IMG/VR virus record: IMGVR_UViG_3300023174_000038
Coordinates: 284,702 to 348,701 of that record
Length of the DNA: 64,000 nucleotides
Direction: 5' to 3' (one strand)
Below, in pieces: positions 282-37,586 of this stretch. A program made the position numbers and the translations under genes. The notes under the pieces are model-generated. The model did not search any database. It saw only the letters and a list, made by a program, of their open reading frames with translations, and was not told the origin of the DNA. How positions within the stretch are numbered: the stretch's first letter is position 1; each line of letters starts with the position of its first letter.

Positions 282-1235
282 TTATTGAAAAATTTCTGGA
301 TGTGCTTTGCCAAATATCTTAATATACTTGCCAGCCATTACATCCGCTTCAGCTTCTATTGGACTACCAGGATAACTATCACCCGGCTTAATCATATTTA
401 ATTCACCCTGACGTACATGTGTTAATTCATGGAACACAGTACGTAATATATCTACTAAATTTCTATTAGCACAATAAACCCATACTTCACCCGTCTCTGG
501 ATTATGTCTTCCAGTATGATGACCTTCTTGTGCTTCATCACTATCATAACTAAACTCTATCTTTGGAGTATTTTGTAAATTCAACTTCTTACTTGTCCAA
601 GCAAGAAACTTCTGTACAATAGGATTACTATTCAAATCTTCTTGTTCAGCTTCTGTAATGTAGGGCTTTAATAACTCTGGATCATATCCTTTATGTCTAG
701 CAGAATCTCGTAATCGTCTTAACCCTTTAGCTTCAATTTGTCTTATTCTATCTCTAGACAAGTCAAACCTATCACCAATCTGTTGTAATGTCATGTCATA
801 CCAAAATCTTAAAATTAATACTTTTCGTTGGTCATCGGTTAATCTGTCTAAGCCGTTTTGGATAATTTGTTTAATACTATCATCTGTTGCAGGCTCCTCA
901 CCAGCTGGATCTTTATATGGTACTCGTTCTGCCCTATTATAAATATCGTTTGGATCATTTAATGTTGGCATTTTATTATGAGCTCCACGATATGTAGCAC
1001 CATCTGGGTTGTAATGTCGTCCTCCAACCTCATCTAGTTTATCTTTAATCCAATTGTCTGGAGTTTTATGATATTTTCTAACAAATAAATCATGCAATGC
1101 ATCACCAGTAATACGGTGTTTCTTTGCTATGTTTTTCATTAGCTTATCAATGGTATTATAGTCGTGTTTCTCTAAGCTAGGAAGTTTCTTAGCTAGTTCA
1201 ACTGCGGCTGATTCGTATAGTTCTATTGCTCTCAT
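282..1235 (-). CDS. Modular protein: capsid-targeting-like N-terminus, sigma-70 region 4 HTH, C-terminal HExxH metallopeptidase-like domain
   Basis: Likely start MRAIELYE at 1235 (TAAATA 5 nt upstream); LTDDQRKVLILRFWYDMTLQQIGDRFDLSRDRIRQIEAKGLRRLR is a typical sigma region 4; TVFHELTH..EAEA. Confidence 0.75.
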   Translation of the reverse strand: MRAIELYESAAVELAKKLPSLEKHDYNTIDKLMKNIAKKHRITGDALHDLFVRKYHKTPDNWIKDKLDEVGGRHYNPDGATYRGAHNKMPTLNDPNDIYNRAERVPYKDPAGEEPATDDSIKQIIQNGLDRLTDDQRKVLILRFWYDMTLQQIGDRFDLSRDRIRQIEAKGLRRLRDSARHKGYDPELLKPYITEAEQEDLNSNPIVQKFLAWTSKKLNLQNTPKIEFSYDSDEAQEGHHTGRHNPETGEVWVYCANRNLVDILRTVFHELTHVRQGELNMIKPGDSYPGSPIEAEADVMAGKYIKIFGKAHPEIFQ

Positions 1236-1269
1236 ATTAGTATTTATGCTCACTTTTGATTTCACAGTA

Positions 1270-2161: not shown

Positions 2162-2788
2162 TTATCCTACTACTGTACGATTCTTTACTTTACTAATTTC
2201 TACACTGAGTGGTGTATTAGTTGTTTTTGCTCTAAATATCTTATCAGTCTCACGTACACCTGGCTTAAGTTCAGATGCTACAATTAAGAATCTTGCTCTA
2301 TTCTTTCTCATGCCAATAAACTCACCTACTAATACTTGGTAATTAGGATAGTTAGGTGTTAAATCTATTTTAGGATTTTCTTGTTCATTGATGCTTTCTG
2401 ACACACCTTGTGCAATTGCTTCACGTGCCTGACGTTCATTTTCTTGTTTGAATCGTTGCATGGCTTGACTATCATTTATTTGTCCACGATCCAGTGCTTG
2501 CCAAATTGGCAAATCAAATGTGAGATATTTTTTTTGTACTGCTTGAGCATAACTAACTTCATTGCCACGACCTTGCCAATCAGGTTTATGCCCCCAAACA
2601 ACAGATACAGATTGACCATTTGGGAAGTTGATACGCATACGCTCTCCATAAAATACATATGTACTACCTTGCCATGTAAAAGCAAGATCGCCATTAACTG
2701 TTTTACCCATAGACCAGCCATGCTTTTTTAACAGTGAATCAACTGCGGCTTGATTATCATTCTCAATAATAAACTCTGTTGCTCTCAT
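2162..2788 (-). CDS. Putative head-packaged two-module protein
   Basis: Start MRATEFIIE resembles T4 IPII/IPIII CTS MKTYQEFIAE; internal junction QGVSE-SINE. Confidence 0.6.
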   Translation of the reverse strand: MRATEFIIENDNQAAVDSLLKKHGWSMGKTVNGDLAFTWQGSTYVFYGERMRINFPNGQSVSVVWGHKPDWQGRGNEVSYAQAVQKKYLTFDLPIWQALDRGQINDSQAMQRFKQENERQAREAIAQGVSESINEQENPKIDLTPNYPNYQVLVGEFIGMRKNRARFLIVASELKPGVRETDKIFRAKTTNTPLSVEISKVKNRTVVG

Positions 2789-3228
2789 TACTCACGTTCT
2801 CTTTTTAATGTTGAACGGATAAACCATGCTTTCTTACCGTATAGGTCTTGCAGTTCAGCCATGTAGTTAGCAATACCCTGTTGACGTTCATTTGTTGCTT
2901 CATCAAACATAGCAACAACAAGTTGACCTAATGTTTCACAATCTTGTAGTAACTCAATAAACATGAGTTCAGCTCTTGGAACTTTAGTTTGGTCTTGAAT
3001 GATACTTAATTCAGCATAACGTGTTAGACTGCCAGGAGTATAGTGACCTAATATTCTGATATATTCAGCTACAGGATCAATAGTAGCATTTACATCTTCA
3101 TACAATGTATTAAAGAATTCGTGATATTGTGGGAAGTTACTTCCCTCCACATTCCAATGAAAGTTTTGTGATTTGATAGCAAAGCTTTGTGTACTAGCTA
3201 ATAGTACTTTTAAATTATCTGATAACAT
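2788..3228 (-). CDS. dps: Dps / ferritin-like protein
   Basis: NFHWNVEGSNFPQYHEFF..Y..D.VAE ferroxidase motifs, 146 aa. Confidence 0.92.
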   Translation of the reverse strand: MLSDNLKVLLASTQSFAIKSQNFHWNVEGSNFPQYHEFFNTLYEDVNATIDPVAEYIRILGHYTPGSLTRYAELSIIQDQTKVPRAELMFIELLQDCETLGQLVVAMFDEATNERQQGIANYMAELQDLYGKKAWFIRSTLKRERE

Positions 3229-3237
3229 GATTACTCG

Positions 3238-6200
3238 TTAGTCTTTCTTTTTTGTATTAACATTGATGGCTTTACCACTACGGTCAGGATTAGGATCTTC
3301 TCTACGTTTACGTTGAGCGGCACTTGCACGACCCTTCTTACCTAGACTATGTGCTTTACTTTGTGGCAAGCATTTTGGTTTACCTTCTCCTGGTTCTCTA
3401 GCACATGGACCTTTAATCTTTCCTTTAGTATCCATGCGAACCCACTTTTCTTTATTAAACCAATCATGCAAACTTTCATCTGCCCTTTCAATACCTTCTA
3501 GTATAGAACTTTCATTCTTCTTCCCACCGTTACCCCAGTTACTTGCGCCTTTGTTGCGACACTTAACTAATGCACCACTGGCATAAGCACTTGGCCATAC
3601 TTTATAACGACTCTTTACTTTGTAGTAGCAAGCATCTTTCTTTTCGTTCATTAATTCTTCACTAACCATTTCGCCACCACAGTGTGGGCAACTTTCACTG
3701 TGTTGGTCTTCATTTGTTTTATTTTTAGCACAACTACCCGGAAAGCCTGCTTTAGTACCAGCAACTCTATGATAGCCGGACCAGCATTTCAATTCATCTA
3801 GTTGATCTTTTGAATGGTCACCGTGTGTTTCACACATACCGCAGTCTTCACAGACCATTTCCATTTCAATGCTTTCATTGTGCTTCTTCTTACCTGCACA
3901 ATGAGCCTTTTGACTAAAGCCTTTAGGATGACTACAGTTAATACTGCTCTTATATTTTTGACTCCAGCCTTCATCCATCTCTTGTTCATTAACGTAAATT
4001 GCGGCAGTTGTTTTATTTAAACTTTGTGGATCTTTTACGCCGGCTGCTACTTTAATTGCTTTAACTTTTTGTCTATAGTCATCAGCATATTCGGCTAATC
4101 TGTAGCCTAACATTTTACCAATTTCTTCAGGTGTAGCTGGTTTATCTTGCGGAGTATTTGCACCAAAAGTTGTGTCTAGTATCTTAGGCCATGCCATCCA
4201 GACCATATTTGATAACTCTTTATATGCTTTGCTTCTTAATTCTTTAATTTGAGCTTCAGCCTCATCTTCAGAAATACTAGGTGCGGGTGCAGGAATAGTT
4301 CCTTTGAATGCTTGAGCATTACCGGCACCGCCTAATCCTGCGGCAGCTAATGCGCCGGCGCCTGCTGCCTTACCCATGTTACCTAAAAACCCTCTACGGT
4401 TCATATCAGCTTCTTTCAAACCTGATTTTTTACGTATATACAATCTATCCTGTAATATTGAAATAGCATTGTCTAACTTTTTATTCAATGATTGATAGTT
4501 ATCTTTTGCACCATACTTAACGTGCATACTAGTATCAGTATCATTCTGCATTGCAGGAGTTAACAAACCTTTACGTTCTAATCTATCAACTAACTTATCT
4601 AATAGTTCTTGCTTTTGTATAGCATTATCTAATTGTGCTAATCTAGCTTTTAATACAGAATGTTTTTCACCAGGTTGTGCAACTGGTGTTGGTTGAAATT
4701 CTCTACGTAAACCTTGTTGTGCTTTTTGTACTGTGTTCTTTTCAAAATCTTGTCTCCAAGCTTCTATTTCAGCTTCACGCTGTTTCTCTATAGCTAATTT
4801 AGCTTGAATCAACGCATCCAATGATGTAGATTTTAATTGATCACCTAAGTTTTCATCAATTGATGCATAACGCTTATCATCTAAATCATCGTGGTAACTT
4901 CTTTGTGGTGGTTTTTTTAGCTCTATTGGTTTCTTAGATGAACCTCTATAACCACGTTCCCATGCCGCTGCACCTGCTGCCGCACTTTTACCATTTTTAA
5001 CAAAGTGATTAATGACTTCTTGTTTACTGTTAAATCTAGGTGATTCTATACCTTCATTTGTTGCCATTTCGCCATCATTACTATGACCATAATATTTGGC
5101 TACTTTTTGTAAATCAGCAGAATTTCTATCGTTAAGATAATCAGTTACTAAATCATGTATCTGATATCTTTGTTCTTGCGGGGCTGGTAATTCTATTTCA
5201 CCTTCACTTGCATCAGCAATATGTGCGGCGCCGGGACTGTCTAAGAACCATATCTCATCATCCTCATCCCATTCTAATCCCCATTTGTCTATTGTTGCAG
5301 TTAATACATAGTTGTTAGTAGTACCTACTACAAATTTGTTACCGCCTATATAACGTGAGCTATTTGGTTGACCGTAATCTTTTGGTCCTTTAGGGCCGCC
5401 AGTTTGTACAAATTCATTTATACCTTGACTGATACCAGATTTCTTTGTATCATTAGCAAATTGTTTTTTAGTTGCACGAACAATACCACTGAAACGTTTA
5501 TCACCACGCTTGTAATCGCCCTCTTTATCAGCTTTTCCTGCATCGGCAGCGGCCGCTGTTTTATATTGTGCTAGTTTCTCATTAGAGATTTCATCTAGTT
5601 GTGATTCAGGCATTAATCCGTGCTTTGTAATACGAGCATCTAATTCATCACGCTCTTTGGAATATTTTTGTATAAGTTCTTTATTACCTACTTGAATTGC
5701 TTGTCTAAGTTTTTCCTGAATGGCATCTGCTAAATCATAGTATTGATCCATTTTCATTCTAGTGGTATTATCTTCTTTTATTGTTTTACCTTGACCTAAT
5801 TGTTGTAAATCACTTGTTAATACATCTTGTGTAACACTACCCATACCTTTTGAAATCGTAATGCGAGAATGTTTACGATCCTTACTCATAGCAACTACTT
5901 TTGATGGTTGTCCAAAATACTTAACAGTATCACCTATCTGTATGTTCTTCATAGATACATTACCAACATTAACCGGTTTATCACCTGCAAAGTTACCTTG
6001 ATCTCCCCATGGGTCATCTAAACTTTCATTTGTACCAGTAGCTAATCTATCATGGTCACTATCACGTTGGGCTTTTTCTGCCGCTGCCTTCATAGCACGA
6101 CCTTTAGCAAAATCTTTTTCTTGTCTTATTAAACCATATGGATCATACTCATCATCATCTGTTTGTGTATGTCTACCACGTTTAGGATATGATGGTGCAT

Positions 6201-6282
6201 CTGCCCCGTATTCTCTTGCTGGATCATTATGTCCGTAAAAAGGATTGGATTCGTTTATTATACCTTTTAGAATATTGCTCAT
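3238..6282 (-). CDS. 1014-aa modular polyprotein, putative head cargo
   Basis: More than 15 short unrelated modules separated by x-x-E junctions (IINE, GTNE, QLDE, GINE, SIDE, GLKE, KHNE, LMNE, SILE); internal Tat-like peptide; Cys/Lys-rich C-terminal modules. Confidence 0.7.
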   Translation of the reverse strand: MSNILKGIINESNPFYGHNDPAREYGADAPSYPKRGRHTQTDDDEYDPYGLIRQEKDFAKGRAMKAAAEKAQRDSDHDRLATGTNESLDDPWGDQGNFAGDKPVNVGNVSMKNIQIGDTVKYFGQPSKVVAMSKDRKHSRITISKGMGSVTQDVLTSDLQQLGQGKTIKEDNTTRMKMDQYYDLADAIQEKLRQAIQVGNKELIQKYSKERDELDARITKHGLMPESQLDEISNEKLAQYKTAAAADAGKADKEGDYKRGDKRFSGIVRATKKQFANDTKKSGISQGINEFVQTGGPKGPKDYGQPNSSRYIGGNKFVVGTTNNYVLTATIDKWGLEWDEDDEIWFLDSPGAAHIADASEGEIELPAPQEQRYQIHDLVTDYLNDRNSADLQKVAKYYGHSNDGEMATNEGIESPRFNSKQEVINHFVKNGKSAAAGAAAWERGYRGSSKKPIELKKPPQRSYHDDLDDKRYASIDENLGDQLKSTSLDALIQAKLAIEKQREAEIEAWRQDFEKNTVQKAQQGLRREFQPTPVAQPGEKHSVLKARLAQLDNAIQKQELLDKLVDRLERKGLLTPAMQNDTDTSMHVKYGAKDNYQSLNKKLDNAISILQDRLYIRKKSGLKEADMNRRGFLGNMGKAAGAGALAAAGLGGAGNAQAFKGTIPAPAPSISEDEAEAQIKELRSKAYKELSNMVWMAWPKILDTTFGANTPQDKPATPEEIGKMLGYRLAEYADDYRQKVKAIKVAAGVKDPQSLNKTTAAIYVNEQEMDEGWSQKYKSSINCSHPKGFSQKAHCAGKKKHNESIEMEMVCEDCGMCETHGDHSKDQLDELKCWSGYHRVAGTKAGFPGSCAKNKTNEDQHSESCPHCGGEMVSEELMNEKKDACYYKVKSRYKVWPSAYASGALVKCRNKGASNWGNGGKKNESSILEGIERADESLHDWFNKEKWVRMDTKGKIKGPCAREPGEGKPKCLPQSKAHSLGKKGRASAAQRKRREDPNPDRSGKAINVNTKKKD

Positions 6283-6283
6283 A

Positions 6284-7165
6284 TCACGCTTTCTTATTCT
6301 TGTTATCTAACATGCCACGCTTATTAGCTGTTGCCCAAGCAATGTTCTCCGCTTCTTTTTTACTGTGACCTAATTTCTTTTCACTTTGTGCTACATGCTT
6401 AACCATACGGTCTACTTTAGCACCTTCATCTATTGGTGCATGAACTGGACATTGGTCTTGACCATGTGTTCTACACACACATTTCAAATTAGGTTTGCCT
6501 TCTGCTACGCCCTGTTGACCATACGTATCAAGAATTTGTCTAACATAAAAATTATAAAAACCACGACGGCTATTGTATTCTCTATCTCCAAGTACAGTCT
6601 TTAGTGCTTTTACAGCATCAGTTACTTCTGGGCCACGCATTATTTTTAATGAGTCAGTAACTAGTGTATCACCTCTTTGTGAGCCTTCTGATACACCTTG
6701 AACTTGTTTACCTTCTAAGTATTCACGTATAGTGTTTAGATAATCATTGGCTTTAATAATCTTTTCTTGTACCCAACCATCAAGACCTTCTTCTTCACTA
6801 AGGTCTTTAATCATTGAATAAACTTGTTGAGCATTCTTTGCGGCACTGAATAGATCACTACGTGCCATCTCAACTTCGTGGTCTATACGACTTTGACCAT
6901 GTGGCACAAATCCATTTTTACGACTACGTCCTTGTCCCGGAACGACAATAACATCATCTTCTTGTAGTTCTGCTTCACTTATTTCAGCACTTTCATTAAT
7001 GCTGTTAGCATATGGAGCACTAGTCTTTTTACCCTTGAATAGTGTGCCTACTTTCTTGCCACCATATATGCTAGGATTTCCCCTAGATTGTGTGCCACCT
7101 AATGGTGAATTTACAGTAGCTATTGCACCTGCTGTTGTAGTTTCAGTGATTTGTTTGATTTTCAT
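6284..7165 (-). CDS. Modular putative head-packaged protein
   Basis: MKIKQITE start; junctions SINE, ELQE, QGVSE, QGVAE, PIDE. Confidence 0.65.
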   Translation of the reverse strand: MKIKQITETTTAGAIATVNSPLGGTQSRGNPSIYGGKKVGTLFKGKKTSAPYANSINESAEISEAELQEDDVIVVPGQGRSRKNGFVPHGQSRIDHEVEMARSDLFSAAKNAQQVYSMIKDLSEEEGLDGWVQEKIIKANDYLNTIREYLEGKQVQGVSEGSQRGDTLVTDSLKIMRGPEVTDAVKALKTVLGDREYNSRRGFYNFYVRQILDTYGQQGVAEGKPNLKCVCRTHGQDQCPVHAPIDEGAKVDRMVKHVAQSEKKLGHSKKEAENIAWATANKRGMLDNKNKKA

Positions 7166-7219
7166 AAGGATTTCCGTACTAATAGTGTATTTATCAAAAT
7201 ACCATAATATGGAAACTTA

Positions 7220-8134
7220 TTAGATTTTGCCTGAGGGCTTTGCTGTTGGTGGGATACCTGCTCTACTAGTATTCCAATAGAATGCTTTTGCGTTCTTTTT
7301 GATACTGTCAGGCTTAACATCTACTGTTAATGCTGTACTAAAACGAGGGTCATTCTTCTGTTTTTTGCTTGGGATATAGCCCGAAGCTTCACCTACATAC
7401 ATTTCATCTACATTAGCGTACATATTGTCTAAACTTAAATGTTTGCTATGTAATTTGTCTCTCAAGTCATATAGTTTTGTAATATAGCCCCTGCTACGTA
7501 ATGCTTTATATGCTAAATTTTCAGGGCTAAACTCACCACCTTTATCTAATCCAGCTTGACGATATTGTTTAATCTTTTTTAATACTTTATTGACTTTACT
7601 TATTTTATCAGATTGTAATACTGTATCAATAATGTCTAATAGTTTTATATATTTTGCTTTAGTAGCTGTTTGGTCAAAGTTAGCTCTACGTTTTGCAGGC
7701 ATACGCAACCATTTATTATCTTTAACACTATACTCACCTAAGCTAGTGACAGGTTCTGCCGCATCTTGTATGTATAATTCTACCGGAATTCCATTGATAG
7801 TAATATCATGTGAATCATTGTATAAATCTTTTTTAGCCTTAAAGAATTCATGGTAAATGTCATCGTCAGGTAAATCCTTCATATTGACTAAGATATGTAA
7901 ATCTAAATCACTATGGTCTGTATAACTATAGGCTGCATTACTTCCGGATATAGTAATATCACGTACATCCAAATCATGTATACCCATCTCTTGTAAGAAA
8001 TCTTGTGCTATGTGTTTTAGTTGTAGTTCAACTTCAGGTTGAAGATGTTGTCCACGGAATAACTTTGGATTGAGGTTATCGTGAAATGTCACAGCATCTG
8101 ACATTTTGAATGAATGTAATTCTTTTAAGTCCAT
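7220..8134 (-). CDS. Pol-beta superfamily nucleotidyltransferase with C-terminal E-delimited module
   Basis: ITISGSNA.YSY...SDLDLH (GS + DxD) with downstream ELYIQD. Confidence 0.8.
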   Translation of the reverse strand: MDLKELHSFKMSDAVTFHDNLNPKLFRGQHLQPEVELQLKHIAQDFLQEMGIHDLDVRDITISGSNAAYSYTDHSDLDLHILVNMKDLPDDDIYHEFFKAKKDLYNDSHDITINGIPVELYIQDAAEPVTSLGEYSVKDNKWLRMPAKRRANFDQTATKAKYIKLLDIIDTVLQSDKISKVNKVLKKIKQYRQAGLDKGGEFSPENLAYKALRSRGYITKLYDLRDKLHSKHLSLDNMYANVDEMYVGEASGYIPSKKQKNDPRFSTALTVDVKPDSIKKNAKAFYWNTSRAGIPPTAKPSGKI

Positions 8135-8138
8135 AGAG

Positions 8139-8144
8139 TATTTA
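8139..8144 (-). promoter_or_regulatory. Representative T4-like late promoter (TAAATA, mostly GATAAATA)
   Basis: Same hexamer directly upstream of many genes (1241, 17227, 22729, 36929, 37647, 47666, 54947, 60617 on minus; 18474, 44076, 49588 on plus); T4 consensus is TATAAATA. Confidence 0.75.
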
Positions 8145-8156
8145 TCTAAAAACTAT

Positions 8157-8176
8157 AAAGCCCCTTTCGGGGCTTT
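8157..8176. terminator. Intrinsic terminator hairpin
   Basis: AAAGCCCC-TTTC-GGGGCTTT just after the stop of 8178..9149. Confidence 0.75.
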
Positions 8177-8177
8177 A

Positions 8178-9149
8178 TTATGCGGCAGTAATTTTCTTTA
8201 TTTCGTTACCATCTTTATCGATGAACTTCATTCCGAACTTTTCTTGCTGTTCTTGTAGGAACATAGGACCAACTGTTTTCATTAGATGTTCCTGATTTTC
8301 CATACAGAATACATAAGATCCTGAGTGACGTAATAGAATACGTTTGTCAACCCAAATCTTACCACCTAAATCACGCCAGTTCTCACAGAATGTCCAATCT
8401 TCACTATAATAACGATTCTGACGGACCGCTGTATCAAAGTAGGTTTTTAAGTGTTGGTCAAACTTAGGATCTAATCCAATGTCGTTTTTATATTGCTTAA
8501 CAGCAGGATGCGATTTGAGTTTTTCAAACACATGTTTCTTCATCAATAAGAAACCTGTACCTGCTTTAGATACTTCTTGGAATCCATCTGGTCCTTCTTC
8601 TGCACCTTCAAATCCATTAACAACCCATTTAATTGGCATTGTTTTCATTGGATATAATCCTGCACAAACATCTACGTTACGGTTCAATAGAACTAATAGA
8701 TGCCATGGTTCCCAACCAATGTCAGCATCAACAAAGAATAAATGTGTTGCGTCTGGCATATCTAGGAACTTAGCAGTCAATGTATTTCGTGCTCGGCTAA
8801 TAAGTGATTCATTAACCATTGTTTCTAATGTCCAATCAATACCAAGTTGACGAGCTGTATTAGCCCACTTGATAAATGACATGAATGTTGATTCTGTTAA
8901 CATACCACCATAGCAGGGCATAGCGATATGTACTTTAGTAGTTTTTAAAAAGTCTACATTAACTTGAACTTGTCCGGGACTCGGTGCTTGTTCTTTTGCA
9001 GCCTGTTCAGCGATTTCCTGTATTTTTTCTACGGGAACTGTTTTTTCTGACATGTCTACTTTAGGTGCTTTAGTAGCTTTAGTAGTTGTTTTTGTTGCGG
9101 CTTTTGCAGGTTTGTCTGCTGCCTTGTCGATTGTTTTCTTTGTTGCCAT
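8178..9149 (-). CDS. GT-A fold glycosyltransferase-like protein with Lys/Ala/Thr-rich N-terminal tail
   Basis: IAMPCYGG, LFFVDADIGW (DxD), YSEDWTFC. Confidence 0.75.
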   Translation of the reverse strand: MATKKTIDKAADKPAKAATKTTTKATKAPKVDMSEKTVPVEKIQEIAEQAAKEQAPSPGQVQVNVDFLKTTKVHIAMPCYGGMLTESTFMSFIKWANTARQLGIDWTLETMVNESLISRARNTLTAKFLDMPDATHLFFVDADIGWEPWHLLVLLNRNVDVCAGLYPMKTMPIKWVVNGFEGAEEGPDGFQEVSKAGTGFLLMKKHVFEKLKSHPAVKQYKNDIGLDPKFDQHLKTYFDTAVRQNRYYSEDWTFCENWRDLGGKIWVDKRILLRHSGSYVFCMENQEHLMKTVGPMFLQEQQEKFGMKFIDKDGNEIKKITAA

Positions 9150-9200
9150 TTGATCCTCTTGTTAAGATACTATTATTTACATCAAAACAAGGGGGTCAAA

Positions 9201-10307
9201 TTATTTTTCCTCTAGATAATCCACACTTTCGGTAACCTTAACTGGATCTTCTTCTGCGTTTCTAAACTCAAAACGACTTTGTTGTAGATTGTACTTTTTA
9301 ATAGCTAATTCTAAATATCTATCAATTAAATTGTACGGTACTTTACGATTAACTAACAGAGGTGTTCTTCTTGGACCATCTAAGTAATATACATCTACAT
9401 ATTGTGGATGAAATACTTTAGCTGTTTTTTCTGCTTCTGCCAAACCTTGCTTTACTGTTTTATAAGCACTCTGTAGCACAAACATATATTCTTTATCTGT
9501 TATATCCGGTAGTATACCTTCAACTGCTGTATTGAAAAAGTCATCACCTGCTATCATATTCATAGCATGTATCATACCCAATTCATCAACATTTTTTTGT
9601 TTTGCTACTTGTATAGCAATTTCCAATAGTTTTCTTATTCTACGATTTCTATCATTCTCGCCACCACCATCACCCCTGTCGCTACTCGGCGGGACAAATT
9701 CATTTAATGATCCTTCTGACAATTCATTACCCATACCCATATCTAACATCTTAACAACATTAGCGGCTAGTTTAGGATTCTTTTGTGTTGCAGGATATAA
9801 ACTCATAACCATTGCTGTCTTACGCTTATCATTCAATGTAGGCCATGCATTACGTATCTCTGTGGCACTAGTGATACCAGGACCAAATTCTACTGTGGGT
9901 AAATAAGCCATGTAAGCATGTTTGCCAAATGGTTGTACATTTTCGCCTGTGTATGGTTGAAAGTATGCCGGACTACCGTCTTTCTTTGTACCACCTGGTT
10001 TAGGACTTTCATTACGATCCTTTTCACTACGAACAAAGATTACCACGTCTTGTTCTGGATTAAACTTATCAGTGATTTCTCTAGGTTGAAATGGACTTTT
10101 AACTTGTATAAAATGTCCAGGACTAACTCCTGCTACCTTAGCTAGTTTTTCTTTAATAGCAAAGGGGAAAGGTCTGGTCTTTGTATCATTGGTAGCGGCT
10201 ACATATACATCAGCACCGGGAAATGCTTTAAGTGCGGCTTGGTACAACGATGCATGACCAGCATGAAAAGGATGAAAGCCTCCTGGCATTATAACAACTG
10301 TACTCAT
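9201..10307 (-). CDS. HIGH-motif (cytidylyltransferase-like) nucleotidyltransferase plus C-terminal E-delimited modules
   Basis: Likely start MSTVVIMPGG; GGFHPFHAGH, ITSATEIR; junctions ELSE, SLNE, QGLAE. Confidence 0.8.
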   Translation of the reverse strand: MSTVVIMPGGFHPFHAGHASLYQAALKAFPGADVYVAATNDTKTRPFPFAIKEKLAKVAGVSPGHFIQVKSPFQPREITDKFNPEQDVVIFVRSEKDRNESPKPGGTKKDGSPAYFQPYTGENVQPFGKHAYMAYLPTVEFGPGITSATEIRNAWPTLNDKRKTAMVMSLYPATQKNPKLAANVVKMLDMGMGNELSEGSLNEFVPPSSDRGDGGGENDRNRRIRKLLEIAIQVAKQKNVDELGMIHAMNMIAGDDFFNTAVEGILPDITDKEYMFVLQSAYKTVKQGLAEAEKTAKVFHPQYVDVYYLDGPRRTPLLVNRKVPYNLIDRYLELAIKKYNLQQSRFEFRNAEEDPVKVTESVDYLEEK

Positions 10308-10308
10308 A

Positions 10309-10695
10309 TCAGTATGATAATTTAACAAAATTAACTACACCACCATTAAAGTCTACAACCTTTGCTCTCATATATACAAAATTACCATCTATATTTGTAT
10401 AGACAGAAGCATTACTAGCAATTTGTGGTGCAGAGTTAGCTGCCGCATTTGCATTAGCTTCTAATTCATATACTTTGAACCAATCAGTGCTACTTGGTGT
10501 TGTGGCTAAACTAGCTTCAATTGTGATATTACCTGTACAGTTTGTTACATTGATATTAACAGTTTGCAGTGAACGTGGTGTTATGATATATGATGCACCG
10601 GGTTGGCTATCACCAGTTACAGTATAGGGTGAATTATTGCCTGGATTAATATAGGTAGTTTGCGGCAATAGAATAAGAGTAGTTGTTTGGCTCAT
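10309..10695 (-). CDS. Hypothetical beta-rich protein, probably structural
   Basis: 128 aa Thr/Asn/Val-rich ORF, coupled to downstream gene. Confidence 0.55.
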   Translation of the reverse strand: MSQTTTLILLPQTTYINPGNNSPYTVTGDSQPGASYIITPRSLQTVNINVTNCTGNITIEASLATTPSSTDWFKVYELEANANAAANSAPQIASNASVYTNIDGNFVYMRAKVVDFNGGVVNFVKLSY

Positions 10696-10894
10696 TATGC
10701 TTTTACAACCTCAACAACTACACTATCACCAATTAATTCTTGGGCAACTTGCTCTAAAGCCGCTTGGATATCAGGACTAGTGATACTAGTGCCGGAATCA
10801 TTATCTTTTACTATCTTACTAAAAGTGATTACGATTGATTCTGTTACAATCTTTGCCATGGTAAATCCTCTATTTTATTAGAGTATTTATCATT

Positions 10895-11620
10895 TTAAAT
10901 AGCTTCTGGGCGTTTTTCTAATTTGTAACGTTTTCCAAGAAATTCCCCGTGCATTAGTGCTAGATAGCTTAATAGGGTTTCGTCATCATAATCAATAAAG
11001 TGATTACTATTGGTATAACGATAGCGCCAACTCCATGAAGGAGCAGTATTATTGTATCCTTGTAACCAGTATTTTAATGACGGGCTAGGATGTAAGTCTT
11101 TGGAACGTTTCAATAAATCATCTAATTGCGTAACAAATGATTCTTGGATCATTTTAGATTTCAAATAAACCCTATACTTATGTTTAGGGTCATTAACAAA
11201 TGCTTTTATTCCTACAAAATTATTTGTTTGAGCTTCTGTATAATCATAAAAGATACCATTTTTAATACTTTCACTAGTCTTTAATAAGGCTAAATCATTG
11301 CTAAAGATTGCTATTCTATTACTCTCAATACGAACTAATCCGGTATTGTTTTCTTTAATCATATTACGAAAATCTATAAACTTCCCAAGAGCCTCTAGAT
11401 TTTCTGTAACTACCGGTCTATCTGCATCTTTTATCTTTTTCCAACCAGTTAAGATATTATATCGTTTCATCAACCCATCAAAGTTTTTTTCATACATAGC
11501 ATATCTAACACCCTCTATAGAGAATCTTACACGATACTTGTATTTGCCATAGTAATCACTATCCCGATAATCGTAAAAATCAATACCCGGAGTATCAGTT
11601 GCTAATTTCAATAATCCCAT
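10895..11620 (-). CDS. Hypothetical protein
   Basis: 241 aa ORF with normal composition, follows clpA. Confidence 0.6.
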   Translation of the reverse strand: MGLLKLATDTPGIDFYDYRDSDYYGKYKYRVRFSIEGVRYAMYEKNFDGLMKRYNILTGWKKIKDADRPVVTENLEALGKFIDFRNMIKENNTGLVRIESNRIAIFSNDLALLKTSESIKNGIFYDYTEAQTNNFVGIKAFVNDPKHKYRVYLKSKMIQESFVTQLDDLLKRSKDLHPSPSLKYWLQGYNNTAPSWSWRYRYTNSNHFIDYDDETLLSYLALMHGEFLGKRYKLEKRPEAI

Positions 11621-13871
11621 CGGATCCTACTTTCGCTATTGATTTCTGTACTACATTGAACTCAATTTTATCATCTACTAATACACAAGTTACTGTAGCA
11701 TTTTTAATACGTTCAAACAATACTTTCTTACTGAGAGGTACACGAATCAATTCATCAATCTTCCGAGCTAATGGACGAGCACCCATCTTCTTATCATAAC
11801 CCTGTTCAGCCAAATAATCAATTACTGGCTCAGTTAAATTCAAACTGACATTATACTTGTCAAGTAATGATTTCTTTAGTTCTTCTGTAAACTTAATTAC
11901 AATCTTCTTAATAGCCAATGTATCTAGTTTACCAAACTTACAAATCAAATCAACACGATTTCTAAATTCTGGTTTGAAGAACTCTTTAATTGCTTTATCA
12001 TCCTCACCTGTCTTTTCTTGGCTACCGAATCCGATATTGTTTTTCTCACTATCACTACTACCCAAGTTACTAGTCATAATGATGATAGTATTTTTACAGT
12101 TAACTTCTTTACCATTACTACCAGTGATACGACCTTCATCTAACATCTGTAAGAAGATATTAAAGATATCCGGATGAGCTTTCTCTACTTCATCAAAGAG
12201 TAAGATACTATGTGGGTTCTTGCTCAAATCATTGATTAATCGTCCACCACCTACTTGACTATCACCAAAGCCAACATAGCCAGGAGGAGGACCAATCAAA
12301 CTTGATACAGAATGTTTCTCACTATATTCTGACATATCATACTTAAGTAATGTCATGTCAAGGTTTTTACTTAGTAGTTTAGCTAATTCTGTTTTACCTG
12401 TACCAGTTGGGCCTAAGAAGATAAAGCTTGCTGTAGGTTTGTTCTCATTACCAATACCAGCAAATGACACATATACACGTTCTAATACTTGTTCAACTGT
12501 TTCATCTTGTCCATACAGTTTACCTTTAATGTTAACTTCAAGGCTACTAATACGGTCGTAGTTATCATCGTTTAGTTTATCAGCAGGTACACCAGTGAAT
12601 CGTTCAACTTGTTCGTGTATTAGTTCTTTGGTAATTAATGCACCTTTGTTCATTGCAACACGTTGTTTAGCACAAGCCGCATCTAGCAAATCAATAGATT
12701 TGTCAGGGTTTTTACGGTCATGAATGTAACGTGCTGAACTATCAACTGCGGCAGTTATTGCTTCCTCAGTGATTTCTACTTCATGGAAATCATTCAACCG
12801 TGAGCTTAAACCTTTGAGGATACGAATTGTACTATCATGTGATGGTTCATCAATAGATACACGATAGAATCTACGCATCAATGCACGATCCTTCTCAAAA
12901 CTTTCGTAGTATTCTTCCCAAGTTGTACTAGCAATAACTTTAAGTGTACCTTTAGTGATAGCTGGTTTAATCATATTAGCAAAGTCAATACTTCCACTAG
13001 TAGATGAACCACTACCTTTCATGGTATGTGCTTCATCAATGAATAGTACTGATTTCTTTTTTGTGTTTAATGCATCCAGTACCTGTTTAACTTTTTCTTC
13101 AAAGTCACCACGATATTTACTTCCGGCAAGCAATGCACCTACTTCAAGTGAGTATAGTTCATGTCCGTGTAAGAATTCCGGTACTGTTTTATCAACTAGC
13201 ATTTGTGCTAGACCTTCAGCGATAGCAGTTTTACCTACACCCGGATCACCTACCATCAATACATTTGATTTGAAACGTTTAGCAAGAACATTAATCATAT
13301 CATCAAGTTCTGTACTACGACCAATCAACGGTTCAAGTTTACCTTGTCGTGCAAGATCGGTTAAGTTAGTAGTATATTCTTCAAGGATTTCATCAGCTTG
13401 ACTTTCTGATAGTTTAGCAGTGAACTCTTGACCCTTATATGTTTTTTGCCAATGTGCCACGAAATCATTTTTATTGATACCGTATTTTAATAAGAAATAA
13501 TGTGCATGACTATTGCCCTCACTAGCGATAGAGAGATATAAGTCAATAGTAGTTACTTGTCTACGACCAGTAAACAATACTTGTGTTACAGAACGATTCA
13601 TTACACGTTCCAAGCTATTTGTTTTGCGTGGTTGAACTTCTGTATCTGGATCTACTTTAGCTACAATAGCGTGTAAGCTATCAATATATGAAGTAACCTC
13701 TTGAATCATATTTGGGGTATCGCACCCAAAACTATCCAAACATTTTTTAAATGGTGTATGTGTTATAAGAGATAACAGTAAATGTTCAATTGTACAATAT
13801 TGATGTTTACGTTGTTTAGACAACTCAATAGCCTGTTCAATGATGGCTTCAATTTCGGGTGAATTATTCAC
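11595..13871 (-). CDS. clpA: ClpA-type Hsp100 AAA+ unfoldase
   Basis: GTG start with SD; Clp N-domain; two Walker A (GDPGVGKT, GPTGTGKT) and B (FIDEAH, LFDEVEK); no ClpB middle domain; IGF ClpP-docking loop. Confidence 0.92.
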   Translation of the reverse strand: MNNSPEIEAIIEQAIELSKQRKHQYCTIEHLLLSLITHTPFKKCLDSFGCDTPNMIQEVTSYIDSLHAIVAKVDPDTEVQPRKTNSLERVMNRSVTQVLFTGRRQVTTIDLYLSIASEGNSHAHYFLLKYGINKNDFVAHWQKTYKGQEFTAKLSESQADEILEEYTTNLTDLARQGKLEPLIGRSTELDDMINVLAKRFKSNVLMVGDPGVGKTAIAEGLAQMLVDKTVPEFLHGHELYSLEVGALLAGSKYRGDFEEKVKQVLDALNTKKKSVLFIDEAHTMKGSGSSTSGSIDFANMIKPAITKGTLKVIASTTWEEYYESFEKDRALMRRFYRVSIDEPSHDSTIRILKGLSSRLNDFHEVEITEEAITAAVDSSARYIHDRKNPDKSIDLLDAACAKQRVAMNKGALITKELIHEQVERFTGVPADKLNDDNYDRISSLEVNIKGKLYGQDETVEQVLERVYVSFAGIGNENKPTASFIFLGPTGTGKTELAKLLSKNLDMTLLKYDMSEYSEKHSVSSLIGPPPGYVGFGDSQVGGGRLINDLSKNPHSILLFDEVEKAHPDIFNIFLQMLDEGRITGSNGKEVNCKNTIIIMTSNLGSSDSEKNNIGFGSQEKTGEDDKAIKEFFKPEFRNRVDLICKFGKLDTLAIKKIVIKFTEELKKSLLDKYNVSLNLTEPVIDYLAEQGYDKKMGARPLARKIDELIRVPLSKKVLFERIKNATVTCVLVDDKIEFNVVQKSIAKVGSDGIIEISN

Positions 13872-13895
13872 ATCCAGTTCCTTTTAAAATAATAT

Positions 13896-14693
13896 TTACT
13901 GTGTTTTAGATTGCAAAATGCTATCAGTTATACGACTGTCTATATTATCAGGTATAAAGGGTTTTAGCAAGATGATTTGGTCGCCATATGCATTAGTACC
14001 TTGTATAGGCATTCCATGTCCGGCTAATTTTAAATGCATAAATGGTTGTGTTTTTGATGGGACAGTTACCTCTAGTGATTTCCCATTAATGGTAGTAAAT
14101 TGAAATGTAGATCCTACAATCAAATCCAATACAGATATAGAATGATTAGTATGTAAGTCATTCATTCTTCTTTCATATTTTAAATGATTATGTACCCTAT
14201 ATTCTACTATTAAGTCATGTGAATCAACTACCTTTTCATAACGTACTTGTCCACCATCAGGTATACCTTTTGGAATATTTACCCTTACCATATGTAATCC
14301 AGATGGTGTTTGTAGTTTTAATAGTTCTTCACCGCCATTATAAACTTGTTCTAAACTAATCCAATAGGTAGTCCTATATGTGTTTTGTTGTTGCGGGTGT
14401 TGTTGTCTAAACATTTGTCCAAACAGATCATCCATATTGAAACCATTCATATTGAAATGAAATCCACCACCCGGGAATCCTTGAAACGGATTACCTTGTG
14501 GCATTGGGTTATCATATTGTTGACGTTGTTGTGGGTCTGAAAGAATGCGATATGCTTCTTCAATCTTTTGAAATGTAGAAGTATCGCCGCCCTTATCAGG
14601 ATGATGTTTACCTGCTAATTTTCTATATGCTTTTTTTATGTCGTCGGCATTAGCATTTTTACCAACGCCTAATGTTGAGTAATGGTCTGTCAT
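13896..14693 (-). CDS. dnaJ: DnaJ/CbpA-type co-chaperone (class II, no Zn finger)
   Basis: J domain with HPD, G/F-rich linker, C-terminal substrate-binding domain. Confidence 0.9.
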   Translation of the reverse strand: MTDHYSTLGVGKNANADDIKKAYRKLAGKHHPDKGGDTSTFQKIEEAYRILSDPQQRQQYDNPMPQGNPFQGFPGGGFHFNMNGFNMDDLFGQMFRQQHPQQQNTYRTTYWISLEQVYNGGEELLKLQTPSGLHMVRVNIPKGIPDGGQVRYEKVVDSHDLIVEYRVHNHLKYERRMNDLHTNHSISVLDLIVGSTFQFTTINGKSLEVTVPSKTQPFMHLKLAGHGMPIQGTNAYGDQIILLKPFIPDNIDSRITDSILQSKTQ

Positions 14694-15431: not shown

Positions 15432-16054
15432 TGTTTTCCTTCTAATTTTTCTTTTGTTCTTCCATAAGCTGCAACTCCTAATACAGCACCCATAGCAATA
15501 TGATAAAGTCCGGCACCTTGTAATGTTAACGGTTGCCATTGATTAGTGACTTGACCCTTACTCATTGCTTGTAATAAACTCCATAATACGGGGAATATAA
15601 CAAAATCACATGTACATGTTATCATATAAACGAATGCCATTAATGGTCGCCATTTTTTATTAATAAAATCTGTGTTATCATTAGCTACTAATACATCTGC
15701 CCCGCTTGCGGCATTTGTTGGGGCTGCTCCTGTGAGGACGGGTTGATTACTGTTTGATTGGTTAATGTTTTGTGTGCTACCAAATCCAGACGTTGGCGCT
15801 CCAAATCCTGAACCACCACCAAAGCCCGTTGATGTTGACGTACCAAAACCACCGGGTGAGCCGAAGCCTCCTGCTGACGGTGAGCCAAATGTTGAAGACC
15901 CGCCAAATGATATGTTGACTGCATTACTATCTCCAAATGAACTGCCTTGCGGAAATTGCTGTATTGTAGGATCAGCCGCTAACATTTCGTGATGGTCATC
16001 ATCTAATGTCATTGGTTGCTCAAATCCTGTTTTCTTAGGTAATATCGTTGCCAT
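15428..16054 (-). CDS. Holin-like membrane protein with FG-rich N-terminal region
   Basis: KWRPLMAFVYM... and YHIAMGAVLGVAAYGRTKEK hydrophobic segments typical of phage 3TM holin-like proteins. Confidence 0.65.
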   Translation of the reverse strand: MATILPKKTGFEQPMTLDDDHHEMLAADPTIQQFPQGSSFGDSNAVNISFGGSSTFGSPSAGGFGSPGGFGTSTSTGFGGGSGFGAPTSGFGSTQNINQSNSNQPVLTGAAPTNAASGADVLVANDNTDFINKKWRPLMAFVYMITCTCDFVIFPVLWSLLQAMSKGQVTNQWQPLTLQGAGLYHIAMGAVLGVAAYGRTKEKLEGKQ

Positions 16055-18471: not shown

Positions 18472-18552
18472 TATAAATAGTAGTGTAGCCCACGAGAATC
18501 TGACCTCTCCGACTACTCTAATGCTCATATCTTGAAAGGAAGCACCAGCATG
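18472..18552 (+). promoter_or_regulatory. Late promoter plus conserved structured HEG leader (copy 1)
   Basis: TATAAATA then AGT-GTAG..CAC-GAGA/TCTC-C..CTAC-TCTAA-TGCT..AAGGA-AGCA-CCAGC-ATG. Confidence 0.8.
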
Positions 18553-19383
18553 ACTATTTATTATTTAATGATTAAGACGCATAATATTACGGGTCTTAAA
18601 TATTTGTGTCAAACTAAACAAAAGAATCCTATTAATTACACAGGTTCCGGAGTTGATTGGAAAATACACTTAAAAGAGCACGGCATAGATATTAGGACTA
18701 GTATCATTAAAGCATCAACTGATAAACATATCATCAATGAGTTAGGAAGACATCTCAGTAATCTATGGAAAATAACTACTGCCATGAATGATTACGGGGA
18801 CAGAATATGGGCTAATAAAATACCTGAAACGGGCGGTGGTGCAGGAGTTACTAGTGATATAGCAAAACAAAGATACGTAGATCATCCTGAGTTGATTGAA
18901 CAATTCAAGAAAACAATGACATTGCCGCAAAGTGTTCAGAGAAGAAAAAAATCTAGGGCTGTTACAGTTTCACAACCTGAATTTAGAGAAAAATTCAAAT
19001 CAACAATGAAACTTGCCATGAATAGACCAGAAGTCAGATTGAATAATAGCATCAATCAGACGAAAGCTCAAAATAGACCCGACGTAAAACTGAATAAAAG
19101 TATTAAACAAAAGGAAGCTCAAAATAGACCCGAAGTTAAGATGCTCAAGAGTAAAAATGGCAAAATAGCACAGAATAGACCAGAGGTTAAAGATTCCAAA
19201 TCAGGTAAAAATAATTATAGATACGATCCAACAATTCGCACATTTATTCATTCTGACGGAACGATAGAAAAAATGCCAGCTAACGATTTCAGTCTAAAGT
19301 ACAACTTAGATCGCGGGTGGCTATCCAATGTAATTCTTGGAAATAGAAAAACAATAAAAGGTTGGTCTGTTAAAGTGCAGTAA
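18550..19383 (+). CDS. Free-standing GIY-YIG (Seg-like) homing endonuclease (HEG2)
   Basis: IYYLMIKTHNITGLKYLCQT..YTGSG..WKIHL; ANKIPETGGG; five tandem NRP(E/D)V repeats. Confidence 0.8.
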   Translation: MTIYYLMIKTHNITGLKYLCQTKQKNPINYTGSGVDWKIHLKEHGIDIRTSIIKASTDKHIINELGRHLSNLWKITTAMNDYGDRIWANKIPETGGGAGVTSDIAKQRYVDHPELIEQFKKTMTLPQSVQRRKKSRAVTVSQPEFREKFKSTMKLAMNRPEVRLNNSINQTKAQNRPDVKLNKSIKQKEAQNRPEVKMLKSKNGKIAQNRPEVKDSKSGKNNYRYDPTIRTFIHSDGTIEKMPANDFSLKYNLDRGWLSNVILGNRKTIKGWSVKVQ

Positions 19384-34766: not shown

Positions 34767-35396
34767 TTATTTTGATACGCTAGCGCCAGTTGCTGGCTTT
34801 GGTGGGCGTTTAATTGTACTCATTGGACTCTTATCGCCCATTTTTTCGTCATCCAAATATGGCTTGAACGGATCAAACGCATTAGGAGTCTTTTGTCCTG
34901 CATAAGGGATATCAATAGTTGAACCCTTCATTTGGTCTTTGATGCTTGATAGATAACTATCACCATATGCTTTATTTGCTTCTTTAGCACCAGGTTGCTC
35001 ACCCATTTCTTCATGTGTAAGTAGTGGGCTATCTTTCATTTCATTAGCGTAGCCTTCAGCTTCACTATTAATGCTATCATCATATTGACTGCTGATAACA
35101 CGAACCATGTTAACATTGTAACCTAGTAACTGTGCAATTTGCTGAATCATTGGTTCAGTAGCTGGGTATCTAAAGTCTGCTTTAATAATAGTTACAGATT
35201 GATTATTCAAATTAGGAAATCCGTATGGATCTTTCTGTATAGGTGTTTTAGTTGGCTCGCTGATTCTGATCGGGTCAAACTTGTTTAGATTGTATTTAAA
35301 CATATCTATAAAGTTTTTATCCACATCACCAGCAATCTTTATAGTATAGTTGTAACTTTTAAGACTTTCGGTTATGTATTGTTTTAGACTACGCAT
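34767..35396 (-). CDS. Putative head-associated protein with CTS-like start
   Basis: MRSLKQYITE. Confidence 0.55.
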   Translation of the reverse strand: MRSLKQYITESLKSYNYTIKIAGDVDKNFIDMFKYNLNKFDPIRISEPTKTPIQKDPYGFPNLNNQSVTIIKADFRYPATEPMIQQIAQLLGYNVNMVRVISSQYDDSINSEAEGYANEMKDSPLLTHEEMGEQPGAKEANKAYGDSYLSSIKDQMKGSTIDIPYAGQKTPNAFDPFKPYLDDEKMGDKSPMSTIKRPPKPATGASVSK

Positions 35397-36438: not shown

Positions 36439-36924
36439 TTATTTATCTGACGGTTCTTTACTGGCCAACATCTTAAGCAACTCGTTGCGGTCTAAAGCTT
36501 TACCCTCACCAACTGGCGTGTTCTCTATCTCTTCGGCTTTTCCAGCCAACTTCTGGTCTAACTGTGCTTTCTTAAGCTGTAAATCAATCATCTTTAACTT
36601 CTTATTCAATTTAGCAGTCTTTGCTGTAATAGCATGACCTAACATGTTACTAGCAACACTAAAAATCTCACTACTAAATCTACTATCAACTTGCATACCC
36701 AAATCACTTAAATCTTTAAAACTATCTACAGCCATCTGCGCTAATTCATCTAACTCATTATCACTAGCATCTAATCCACGTACTTGTGGCAATGCATTAT
36801 CAATCTTCTCTAACGCACTTAATGCATCAGTGGTTATATCACGTGCATTTTCTGGTATAGGAATATGCAAGCTGTCAATCTCATCTTGCGGTAGCTCAAA
36901 TAATTCGTTTAATTTTTTCGTCAT
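36439..36924 (-). CDS. Hypothetical helical protein, possibly terminase small subunit-like
   Basis: 161 aa helical/coiled-coil; position near head-completion gene; weak resemblance only. Confidence 0.45.
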
Positions 36925-37586
36925 ATGTTATTTATTCGGTCTCTGTTATCCAAAATGTATTTTACCCTATCCCATGAGATTTGAAGTTTAATAGATATCT
37001 GTCTAATATTTGTACCACTATCAGCTAATTCAAACACTTGAGGGAATAAGTGTTTGTTCTTGTCAATATATGTTGTAACCATCTGTTCTCTTTTTTCATC
37101 AGACCAGGTAGATCCTTTTCTATTTTCTGCAGCCTTCAAGCAATTATTAAGTCTATTTTCTAGTGCCTTTTCAGACCAAACTTTGTATTCTGTTTGGTAT
37201 ATTTTAATTTTTTCTTTAGTGGACTCTTTACGTTTTATACCAGTACGTTGCTCGGTAAATAATTTTTTAGTATGTTCATAATGTTTAAATCCAGATACTC
37301 CTTCTCCACCATCGGTTCTATTTTGTAGTATACCGGTATTATTATTCTTTCTACCATACCATTTAATCATCCTTCGTTCTATTGCAAATGCACCTATTTC
37401 TGTTAAACCGGATTCTAATATAATAATCCTAGACGTGTCTTTTGGAGTTTTAAATCGTTCAGTATTTGCGTGACCCCACGCTCTATATCCGTGTCCTTTA
37501 CCGATGTAATACGGTGTGTTATCTTTCCGTAGATAGGCATATACATAAAACCCCGCAGGATATAATTTTTTATAATAAATAGTCAT
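36921..37586 (-). CDS. Free-standing GIY-YIG homing endonuclease (HEG3)
   Basis: [21 protein letters not shown]....I...[11 protein letters not shown]. Confidence 0.85.

Follow-up and report, generated by a model that had tools for sequence, protein, structure and literature searches.

Recurrent QG(V/I/L)xE joints between protein modules of a lake-water jumbo phage: a site of in-frame module exchange and a candidate head-protease cleavage site

The last 64 kb (64,000 nucleotides, hereafter the window) of the 348,701-bp viral record IMGVR_UViG_3300023174_000038 (36% G+C) encodes proteins built from several modules, between which a short peptide of the form Q-G-(V/I/L)-x-E, here called the joint, recurs. 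The record belongs to a lake-water jumbo phage whose occurrences are mainly in lake and freshwater metagenomes, none of the runs listed being on record as RNA. A preliminary description, made from the letters of this DNA, had listed five 15-mers encoding the joint, and all five lie where it put them; each is in frame within one of four minus-strand open reading frames (ORFs) (Table 1). A count over the whole 348.7-kb genome, which that description had proposed, found only six in-frame copies of QG[VIL]xE, five of them within this 7-kb stretch; the sixth (genome positions 263104-263118), outside the window, is the sole exact copy in the genome of CAAGGTGTGGCGGAA, the DNA word that dominates in relatives and that we refer to as canonical. 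A degenerate DNA pattern for the joint matched six times in the window against 0.79 expected, and 0 of 100 shuffles reached six; one of these matches, at 50432-50446 (+), is out of frame and was set aside as chance.

Table 1. Joints, multi-module proteins, leader-like starts and a promoter-like motif in the window. Positions count from its first nucleotide; a slash marks the predicted point of cleavage.
Feature	Position	Strand	Description
QGVSE/S joint, CAAGGTGTGTCAGAA	2396-2410	-	aa 127-131 of 208-aa ORF; 2 nt off canonical word
QGINE/F joint	5413-5427	-	aa 286-290 of 1014-aa ORF; 5 nt off canonical word
QGVAE/G joint, CAGGGCGTAGCAGAA	6500-6514	-	aa 218-222 of 293-aa ORF; 4 synonymous differences from canonical word
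QGVSE/G joint	6686-6700	-	aa 156-160 of 293-aa ORF; 3 nt off canonical word; separates conserved N-module from next module
QGLAE/A joint, CAAGGTTTGGCAGAA	9435-9449	-	aa 294-298 of 375-aa ORF; 2 nt off canonical word
293-aa multi-module protein	6284-7165	-	128 IMG/VR relatives; no Pfam family match
1014-aa multi-module protein	3238-6282	-	leader-like start MSNILKGIINE/S
208-aa two-module protein	2162-2788	-	leader-like start MRATEFIIE/N
375-aa protein	9201-10328	-	cytidylyl/adenylyltransferase-like N-terminal domain (CTP_transf_like), middle part, joint, variable C-module; no leader resembling a capsid targeting sequence
327-aa protein, same mosaic class	282-1265	-	leader-like start MRAIELYE/S from internal Met, sigma-70 region 4, C-terminal HExxH (zincin-like) end
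Leader resembling a capsid targeting sequence, MKIKQITE/T	7142-7165	-	293-aa protein
Similar leader, MRATEFIIE/N	2762-2788	-	208-aa protein
Similar leader, MSNILKGIINE/S	6250-6282	-	1014-aa protein
Similar leader, MRAIELYE/S	1212-1235	-	327-aa protein
Promoter-like GATAAATA(C)	7188-7195	-	22 nt upstream of 293-aa gene

Each site had also been placed at a module boundary, and at all five the similarity of some homologues stops whereas that of others reads through. At residue 160 of the 293-aa protein (joint 6686-6700) 32 homologues end and 26 continue, and a 189-nt match of 92.6% to loci L035 and L036 begins exactly there; ten end and 11 read through at 5413-5427, three match the downstream side only and two read through at 2396-2410, and the junction counts are 5 left, 1 right and 18 through at 6500-6514 and 3 left and 4 through at 9435-9449. 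The 5413-5427 copy is atypical, with Phe after Glu and a conserved left context (GISQGINEF). The relatives encode QGINE by an identical 15-mer in 7 of 8 copies, which fits inheritance together with that context. The remark that two of the five copies share 14 of 15 nt proved unremarkable when taken alone, as independent encodings of QGVSE share at least 14/15 nt with P = 0.12 under genome codon usage. The DNA-level signal is visible in relatives rather than among the window's own copies, and from the sequences we read the five sites as drifted copies, at old junctions, of an inter-module joint used throughout the lineage.

From its leader, MKIKQITE/, the 293-aa protein runs through an N-module, a joint, a helical module, a second joint, a 24-aa Cys mini-module and the site IDE/G to a conserved C-module. 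Its IMG/VR relatives, 207-901 aa long, hold the N-module in common and usually the C-module, with differing modules between the two. An AlphaFold model of the protein, used solely for the positions of confidence dips, has a mean pLDDT (predicted local distance difference test score) of 55 and falls below 50 at residues 152-162 and 219-229, so that the predicted dips are at both joints, between helical modules. A comparable insertion is seen in a relative of the neighbouring 327-aa protein (L092, 863 aa), which has the same two ends, extra modules between them and three canonical joints. Across roughly 130 related contigs the joint stands between hundreds of unrelated modules. Splitting 237 joint-bearing ORFs at their joints gave 817 segments in 538 similarity clusters, and the inner modules had a median length of 82 aa, with an interquartile range of 57-146. 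The N-module of the 293-aa family is followed by 19 different module clusters, and a DUF5872-like end module is preceded by eight. Recognisable modules in relatives include ParB_N, dCMP/cytidine deaminase, GNAT, LysM and DUF6321, for example GNAT with deaminase and DUF6934 in L113, ParB_N in L115, LysM in L101 and DUF6321 in L092 and L106.

For claims about DNA we relied on relatives picked by protein homology and not by motif (L009-L088), the only sample whose analyses are unbiased in this respect. Among relatives the joint has the consensus (K/E/Q)-Q-G-V-A-E/G with unconserved flanks, and QGVAE occurs in 61 distinct 25-aa contexts among relatives of the 293-aa protein against 0.23 expected, a 260-fold excess. 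In 41 of these 61 contexts it is encoded as CAAGGTGTGGCGGAA. Codon choice at the joint departs from background (Val GTG 84% vs 10%, Ala GCG 93% vs 7%, Gly GGT 95% vs 53%), and elsewhere in word-bearing ORFs GTG and GCG stand at 18% and 7%. Copies of QGVAE agree pairwise at a mean of 14.3 of 15 nt, compared with 12.4 ± 0.11 in simulations from codon usage. EGVAE and KGVAE share the same DNA core, and QGLAE and QGMAE are mostly one-base derivatives of it. Conservation falls off within one or two bases of the word, and in motifs within conserved domains third positions vary freely. The preliminary description had asked whether synonymous positions at the joint vary freely or are conserved beyond the needs of the protein; this fixed word, with its rare codons and 14.3/15 identity, reveals that they are constrained.

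At least 120 IMG/VR stretches contain the exact 17-mer formed by the word and the next GG; of 103 occurrences, 100 are in frame, within open frames of median 542 codons. With one mismatch allowed, the canonical 14-mer core has 0, 0, 3, 6 and 9 copies across large relatives. One of these relatives, G007 (L218-L235; 342,865 bp), shares 181 of 375 ORFs with the genome studied here and carries four canonical words at 47% G+C, against 36% here, so the word is preserved despite a large shift in base composition. A translational pause at rare codons was considered as the main cause of the fixed spelling and rejected: only GTG and GCG are used (never GTC, GTT, GCC or GCT), and the common codons GGT and CAA are fixed too.

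Breakpoints are not random with respect to the joint, a point on which the preliminary description had made its crossover idea depend: the ends of similarity cluster there at both the protein and the nucleotide level. At 105 of 111 informative joints, homologue similarity stops within 8 aa, compared with 47% at control positions. Among matches of at least 85% nucleotide identity, 246 of 1096 distinct internal ends (22.4%) coincide with the 15-mer to within 3 nt, a share that chance would put at 2.4%. Right ends of matches cluster at +15 to +19 and left ends at -3 to +1 of the word, the pattern that homology extending across a shared joint and ending there would leave. Cassettes bounded by two joints are 97-99.5% identical with flanks at random level (0.21-0.31 identity), and near-identical cassettes are found in two genes of one contig and across phage contigs. 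A 388-nt module is 99.5% identical between L196 (~8989-9372) and L053 (~15642-16025), a 167-nt module is 99.4% identical in two different genes of L151 (~3311-3475 and ~4619-4783), and other pairs (L099/L030 and L109/L045) reach 97-98%.

Contigs from lake metagenomes (two runs, one other study) add three junctions with one side at 9435-9442, inside the 9435-9449 joint, one junction 3 aa upstream of the 6500-6514 site, and further ones at TNE/S (aa 86) and MPE/S (aa 226/227) of the 1014-aa protein; because these contig junctions were drawn at 85% likeness, we treat them as supportive only. At one orthologous junction behind the N-module, the three copies of the canonical word each lead into a new module, different in each case, and the common module stands behind drifted joints whose third positions vary. 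With match ends on the word and near-identical cassettes in different genes and phages, the idea of an in-frame crossover point is borne out, and we conclude with high confidence that the joint is a recombination joint at which modules are exchanged in frame between genes and phages. New junctions would be born canonical, as CAAGGTGTGGCGGAAG(G), through exchange with a pool of canonical cassettes, and would then drift. Microhomologies of 6-10 bp are known to serve recombination in T4-type phages, T4 itself using ones of 2-10 bp (PMC9391042), and a word of 15-17 bp is therefore ample for exchange.

The peptide itself resembles a processing site. T4 gp21 cuts after L/I-x-E (PMC9026906), and the five window sites (VSE, INE, VAE, VSE and LAE) have V, I or L at P3 and E at P1, with Val extending the L/I of T4. 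The genome encodes a T4-type Peptidase_S77 (PF03420) prohead protease (97 bits; genome positions 98531-99184) homologous to the solved T4 gp21 structure 5JBL (E = 2.6e-15), in a neighbourhood of portal, scaffold and Gp23 capsid genes, the capsid gene encoding a Gp23-type major capsid protein (PF07068, 329 bits). A scaffold-like protein between the protease and capsid genes is dense in hydrophobic-x-Glu sites, and the capsid protein has four within its first 43 residues, before the part that aligns with mature T4 gp23*; sites in the scaffold-like protein and the capsid N-terminus read LLE/G, LLE/G, ILE/N and LAE/S. Of the 638 breakpoints that do not coincide with G[VILM]xE, 45% have another hydrophobic-x-Glu site no more than 3 aa away, where chance would give 11.7%. 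The rule thus holds where the DNA word is absent, and this speaks for a role of the peptide as such. In T4, processing is blocked when Asp takes the place of the P1 Glu.

The starts of the proteins point the same way. T4 internal proteins are diverse cargo with only a 10-residue capsid targeting sequence (CTS) in common, which gp21 removes (PMC3012670, PMC8442874); the T4 sequence MKTYQEFIAE is cut after I-A-E (PMC8442874, PMC9026906). Judged by resemblance, T4-CTS-like leaders begin three of the four joint-bearing ORFs in the window and the neighbouring 327-aa ORF, the 375-aa ORF being the one without. Relatives start with similar leaders, and in some of them, for example L091 and L114, the leader is followed directly by a joint.

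These observations suggest a two-part explanation. A CTS-like N-terminal leader would bring the chain of modules into the prohead, where the Peptidase_S77 prohead protease would cut behind the Glu of each exposed hydrophobic-x-Glu joint. One polyprotein would in this way yield several small proteins, each comparable in length to T4 IPI* (76 aa), that are kept in the head and injected with the DNA; one leader would serve many cargoes, and a standard joint would permit reshuffling without loss of frame or of processing. We consider it probable that the joint is cleaved by the head protease, and the balance tips slightly towards packaging of the modules in the head and their injection. To the explanation as a whole, in which the joint serves both recombination and cleavage by the head protease, we assign a probability of roughly 0.58.

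Gene order and upstream motifs bear on when these proteins may be made. The 293-aa, 1014-aa, Dps-like and 208-aa genes trail the promoter-like motif almost without gaps. The motif, GATAAATAC, is enriched upstream of genes, with 51 of its 74 genome copies within 80 nt upstream of an ORF. That the multi-module genes have it in common with the tail sheath gene hints at late expression. Written GATAAATA(C), it is a variant of the T4 late promoter box and lies 4-60 nt upstream of 50 ORFs genome-wide, among them that of the tail sheath, a number of very large genes and a Gly-rich 'MSxTFSGG...' paralogue family. For the exact T4 box, TATAAATA, the window shows no enrichment, with 5 copies where 13.8 were expected. 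The immediate neighbours of the joint-bearing genes in the window are not structural genes.

Other accounts of the joint differ in which of these observations they can absorb. Chance or codon bias, with the same short peptide spelled in preferred codons, would cover the window's 14/15-nt pair alone; it is refuted by the excess of matches in the window and in relatives, the rare codons and the breakpoint pile-up, and its probability is negligible. The joint might instead act in recombination only, as a short inter-domain linker that tolerates swaps and is left uncut in intact multi-domain chains, packaged or not. Some classical polyvalent proteins are transferred uncut (PMC5512222), the 375-aa ORF lacks a leader, and cleavage in our system is a prediction; a linker of this kind nevertheless fails to explain why hydrophobic-x-Glu is kept at junctions of quite different DNA, why a leader can be followed directly by a joint, and why the joint agrees with the processing motif of this genome's capsid and scaffold proteins. 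We regard this account as unlikely, while giving it some weight. Cleavage by a different protease, either a zincin-like HExxH module carried by some of the proteins or a host protease acting after injection, would fit the HExxH end of the 327-aa window protein and of L092, and metallopeptidase domains have been suggested to autoprocess polyvalent proteins (PMC5512222). However, an HExxH module is absent from most joint-bearing ORFs, no Pfam peptidase family was matched in the ORFs scanned, and Glu at P1 is the signature of T4-type head proteases (PMC9026906), which makes another protease very unlikely.

The DNA word could also be an active signal that starts exchange: a phage nuclease or recombinase might recognise it, or it might work as a Chi-like site or form a G-rich structure. 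At the protein level such a signal is compatible with the two-part explanation. One fixed rare-codon word stands between more than 200 different module pairs (a set that includes word-selected loci), its core is GC-rich within AT-rich genomes, and together with a following Gly codon it makes four GG tracts, two of which are created by the rare third-position Gs of GTG and GCG; a homing-endonuclease-type NUMOD3 gene also lies in the window. By contrast, the word drifts freely at orthologous old junctions, indicating that there is no site-by-site selection; copy number ranges from 0 to 9 among genomes of the clade, the word is almost never out of frame or intergenic, and no enzyme is linked to it. 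We therefore consider an active signal rather improbable. A bolder form, in which an enzyme or DNA structure acting at the G-rich 15-17-nt word would drive programmed, integron-like in-frame shuffling of injected effector modules while the word also encodes the protease site, we hold to be similarly doubtful.

The combination of recombination joint and head-protease site that we prefer has points of its own against it. Cleavage and virion location are predictions, in a clade without a cultured member, and hydrophobic-x-Glu is a short and common motif. The 375-aa ORF has a joint yet no CTS-like leader and starts with an enzyme domain, and Phe after QGINE is unusual for a T4-type site. The window's five copies have drifted to 2-5 nt from the canonical word. 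Loci from L091 onward were fetched with the exact 17-mer and are biased towards the canonical word, especially for the count of module pairs. The AlphaFold model is poor overall, and the head genes are not preceded by the GATAAATAC motif.

The phage represents a clade of uncultured freshwater jumbo phages with a T4-type head. By capsid protein its closest cultured phages (~66-67% identity) are Vibrio phage 2.275.O, Sinorhizobium phage Phosso and the Pseudomonas PA5oct group. These three nearest cultured genomes have no in-frame QGVAE-coded site, the lone match in PA5oct being out of frame. A search for near-identical DNA between the region and cultured phages gave zero matches, as did a tblastn comparison of the 293-aa protein with 50,697 phage records. 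Protease and capsid genes were not found in two large word-bearing contigs, G007 and G009, the latter 76% complete; those of G007 are missing because the ends of the contig fall within the head module.

Matches of the 1014-aa protein to cultured phages are limited to its last ~250 aa, where they correspond to separate small cyanophage ORFs; a DUF5872 match is weak. Its C-terminal modules (3238-3990, minus strand; Cys-rich CPHCGG..., KDACYYKVKSRYKVWPSAYASGALVK... and WVRMD...KPKCLP...) have counterparts in 369 phage records, almost exclusively of marine cyanophages (Synechococcus/Prochlorococcus), where they are separate small hypothetical ORFs; phage Bellamy encodes them as two genes side by side. 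What are modules here thus occur elsewhere as free genes. In the middle of the same protein (aa 627-660; 4303-4404, minus strand), a twin-arginine-like signal (MNRRGFLG..., an Ala/Gly-rich stretch and AQA) stands directly behind LKE/A, and in L049 (~10600-10700) such a signal stands directly behind QGMAE/D. The twin-arginine translocation (Tat) signal of the 1014-aa protein scored below curated cut-offs (TIGR01409, 14.2 against 16.7; TIGR02811, 16 against 48) and had no Pfam match. If the chain were cut at LKE/A, a module would start two residues before the Tat-like signal, a hint that the host Tat system might re-export it after injection.

Just past its leader the 293-aa ORF reads TTTAGAIATVN (aa 9-19; 7109-7141, minus strand), with T10 and G13 invariant in the family, and the capsid protein reads TTTAGNIATLN (aa 48-58; genome 100459-100491) just past its last propeptide site; the pairwise match has 13/32 identities and E = 1e-5. 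This TTTAG element, common to the 293-aa family and the capsid protein, may let both dock to the scaffold core. Farther along the window, a 746-aa protein without a family match (32514-34754, minus strand) has a leader-like start, MDFKSLLSQLDQLNE/A, and alternating very basic and very acidic stretches. Its 13 hydrophobic-x-Glu-[GSA] sites (17 per 1000 aa) make it, jointly with the 293-aa ORF, the densest in the region, and it is a candidate head-core or internal protein. The gene that follows it (34767-35396) begins MRSLKQYITE/S. Relatives also contain a second recurrent joint type, approximately (Q)EMTGGVIAGG(V/M)(G/A)GE followed by G or S, directly behind the N-module (L032, L046, L056, L070, L085, L077 and others), and a recurrent (E/S/D)QLDE(L/K/I) element often stands behind the main joint; both terminate in hydrophobic-x-Glu-like sites.

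Among the mosaic genes lie a host-type gene for a secreted DNA/RNA non-specific endonuclease (PF01223; 1339-2151, minus strand) and, between two polyprotein genes, one for a Dps/ferritin-like protein (2788-3228, minus strand). At 11595-14693 (minus strand) a putative ClpA/B-like ATPase adjoins a putative DnaJ-like protein, both host-type and named from a reading of the sequence alone. ORFs with a homing-endonuclease-like start ('IYxYKxT...GxxYIG') are found at 46942-47604 (-), 36921-37586 (-), 18532-19383 (+) and, adjoining the capsid gene, at genome positions 101625-102602; they may be relevant to break-induced exchange. A GIY-YIG identity for several such 'IYxxK' ORFs was not confirmed by Pfam, whose sole match was NUMOD3 in the ORF at 46942-47604 (E = 6.5e-06).

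If the two-part explanation is true, a short element acts at three levels, as a protease site, a frame-keeping crossover point and a population-wide currency of modules. The protease site would convert one capsid-targeted chain into many small injected proteins, and the common currency would move hundreds of module types between genes and phages, providing a mechanism by which giant phages build and renew first-strike arsenals that are probably anti-defence. Because joints mark module borders, hundreds of small effectors could be excised for individual testing. The layout also points to a design rule, taken from nature, by which several cargo proteins might be packed into one T4-type head, and the upkeep of short DNA words by recombination itself (second-order selection) would become directly testable. 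A limited search of the searchable literature returned no prior description of the peptide joint or of the polyprotein and ejection concept, its QGVAE matches being alpha-synuclein papers.

The system resembles the T4 internal proteins (IPI, IPII, IPIII and Alt) in its T4-type protease and capsid protein, in the short N-terminal leader ending in hydrophobic-x-Glu, in highly diverse cargo that has only the leader in common, and in a module size near that of mature IPI*. T4's proteins are cut once, beside the leader, whereas here the motif repeats along the chain, joining from two to more than six unrelated modules by joints whose peptide and DNA word are both standard. Pfam and NCBIfam scans of the proteins here found none of the IPI, IPII, IPIII and Alt families, and with no sequence homology found, the resemblance is one of working alike and not of membership. 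Ejection and inner-body proteins of phiKZ-like giant phages (phiKZ, 201phi2-1 and SPN3US) are likewise processed by a gp21-related protease that cuts head proteins at several short x-x-Glu motifs; there the protease belongs to family S80, the motif is S/A-x-E, the cuts are mostly propeptide trimming, and modular cassette exchange at the sites is not described.

In polymorphic toxins, a short motif (VENN in CdiA, PxxxxDPxGL in Rhs) borders the variable module and provides homology for recombining new modules in; these proteins are bacterial, with one junction each and long conserved upstream sequence. Their junctions are unrelated in sequence to the joint and lack its serial, beads-on-a-string layout, no VENN or Rhs family or motif was found in the ORFs of the window and relatives that were scanned or read, and the likeness is one of analogy only. 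Polyvalent proteins (Iyer, Burroughs, Anand, de Souza and Aravind 2017; PMC5512222) come closer in content, with many unrelated small effector-like domains on one phage polypeptide predicted to travel with the DNA and overlapping domain types (ParB-like, deaminase, acetyltransferase and a zincin-like end). At least two unrelated effector-type domains per polypeptide, the mark of the polyvalent type, are found in relatives, and the window has sigma70_r4 with HExxH, CTP_transf_like with other modules, and the weak DUF5872 match. In contrast to our joints, the report on polyvalent proteins, whose text nowhere uses the word 'linker', describes no conserved linker, linker DNA word or linker-centred exchange, and assigns processing to embedded metallopeptidases and not to the head protease (PMC5512222). 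For the exchange itself the parallel is microhomology recombination in T4 (PMC9391042), where very short identical sequences likewise suffice within a T4-type replication and recombination system. T4's microhomologies are accidental and differ from event to event, whereas here one recurring word preserves the reading frame.

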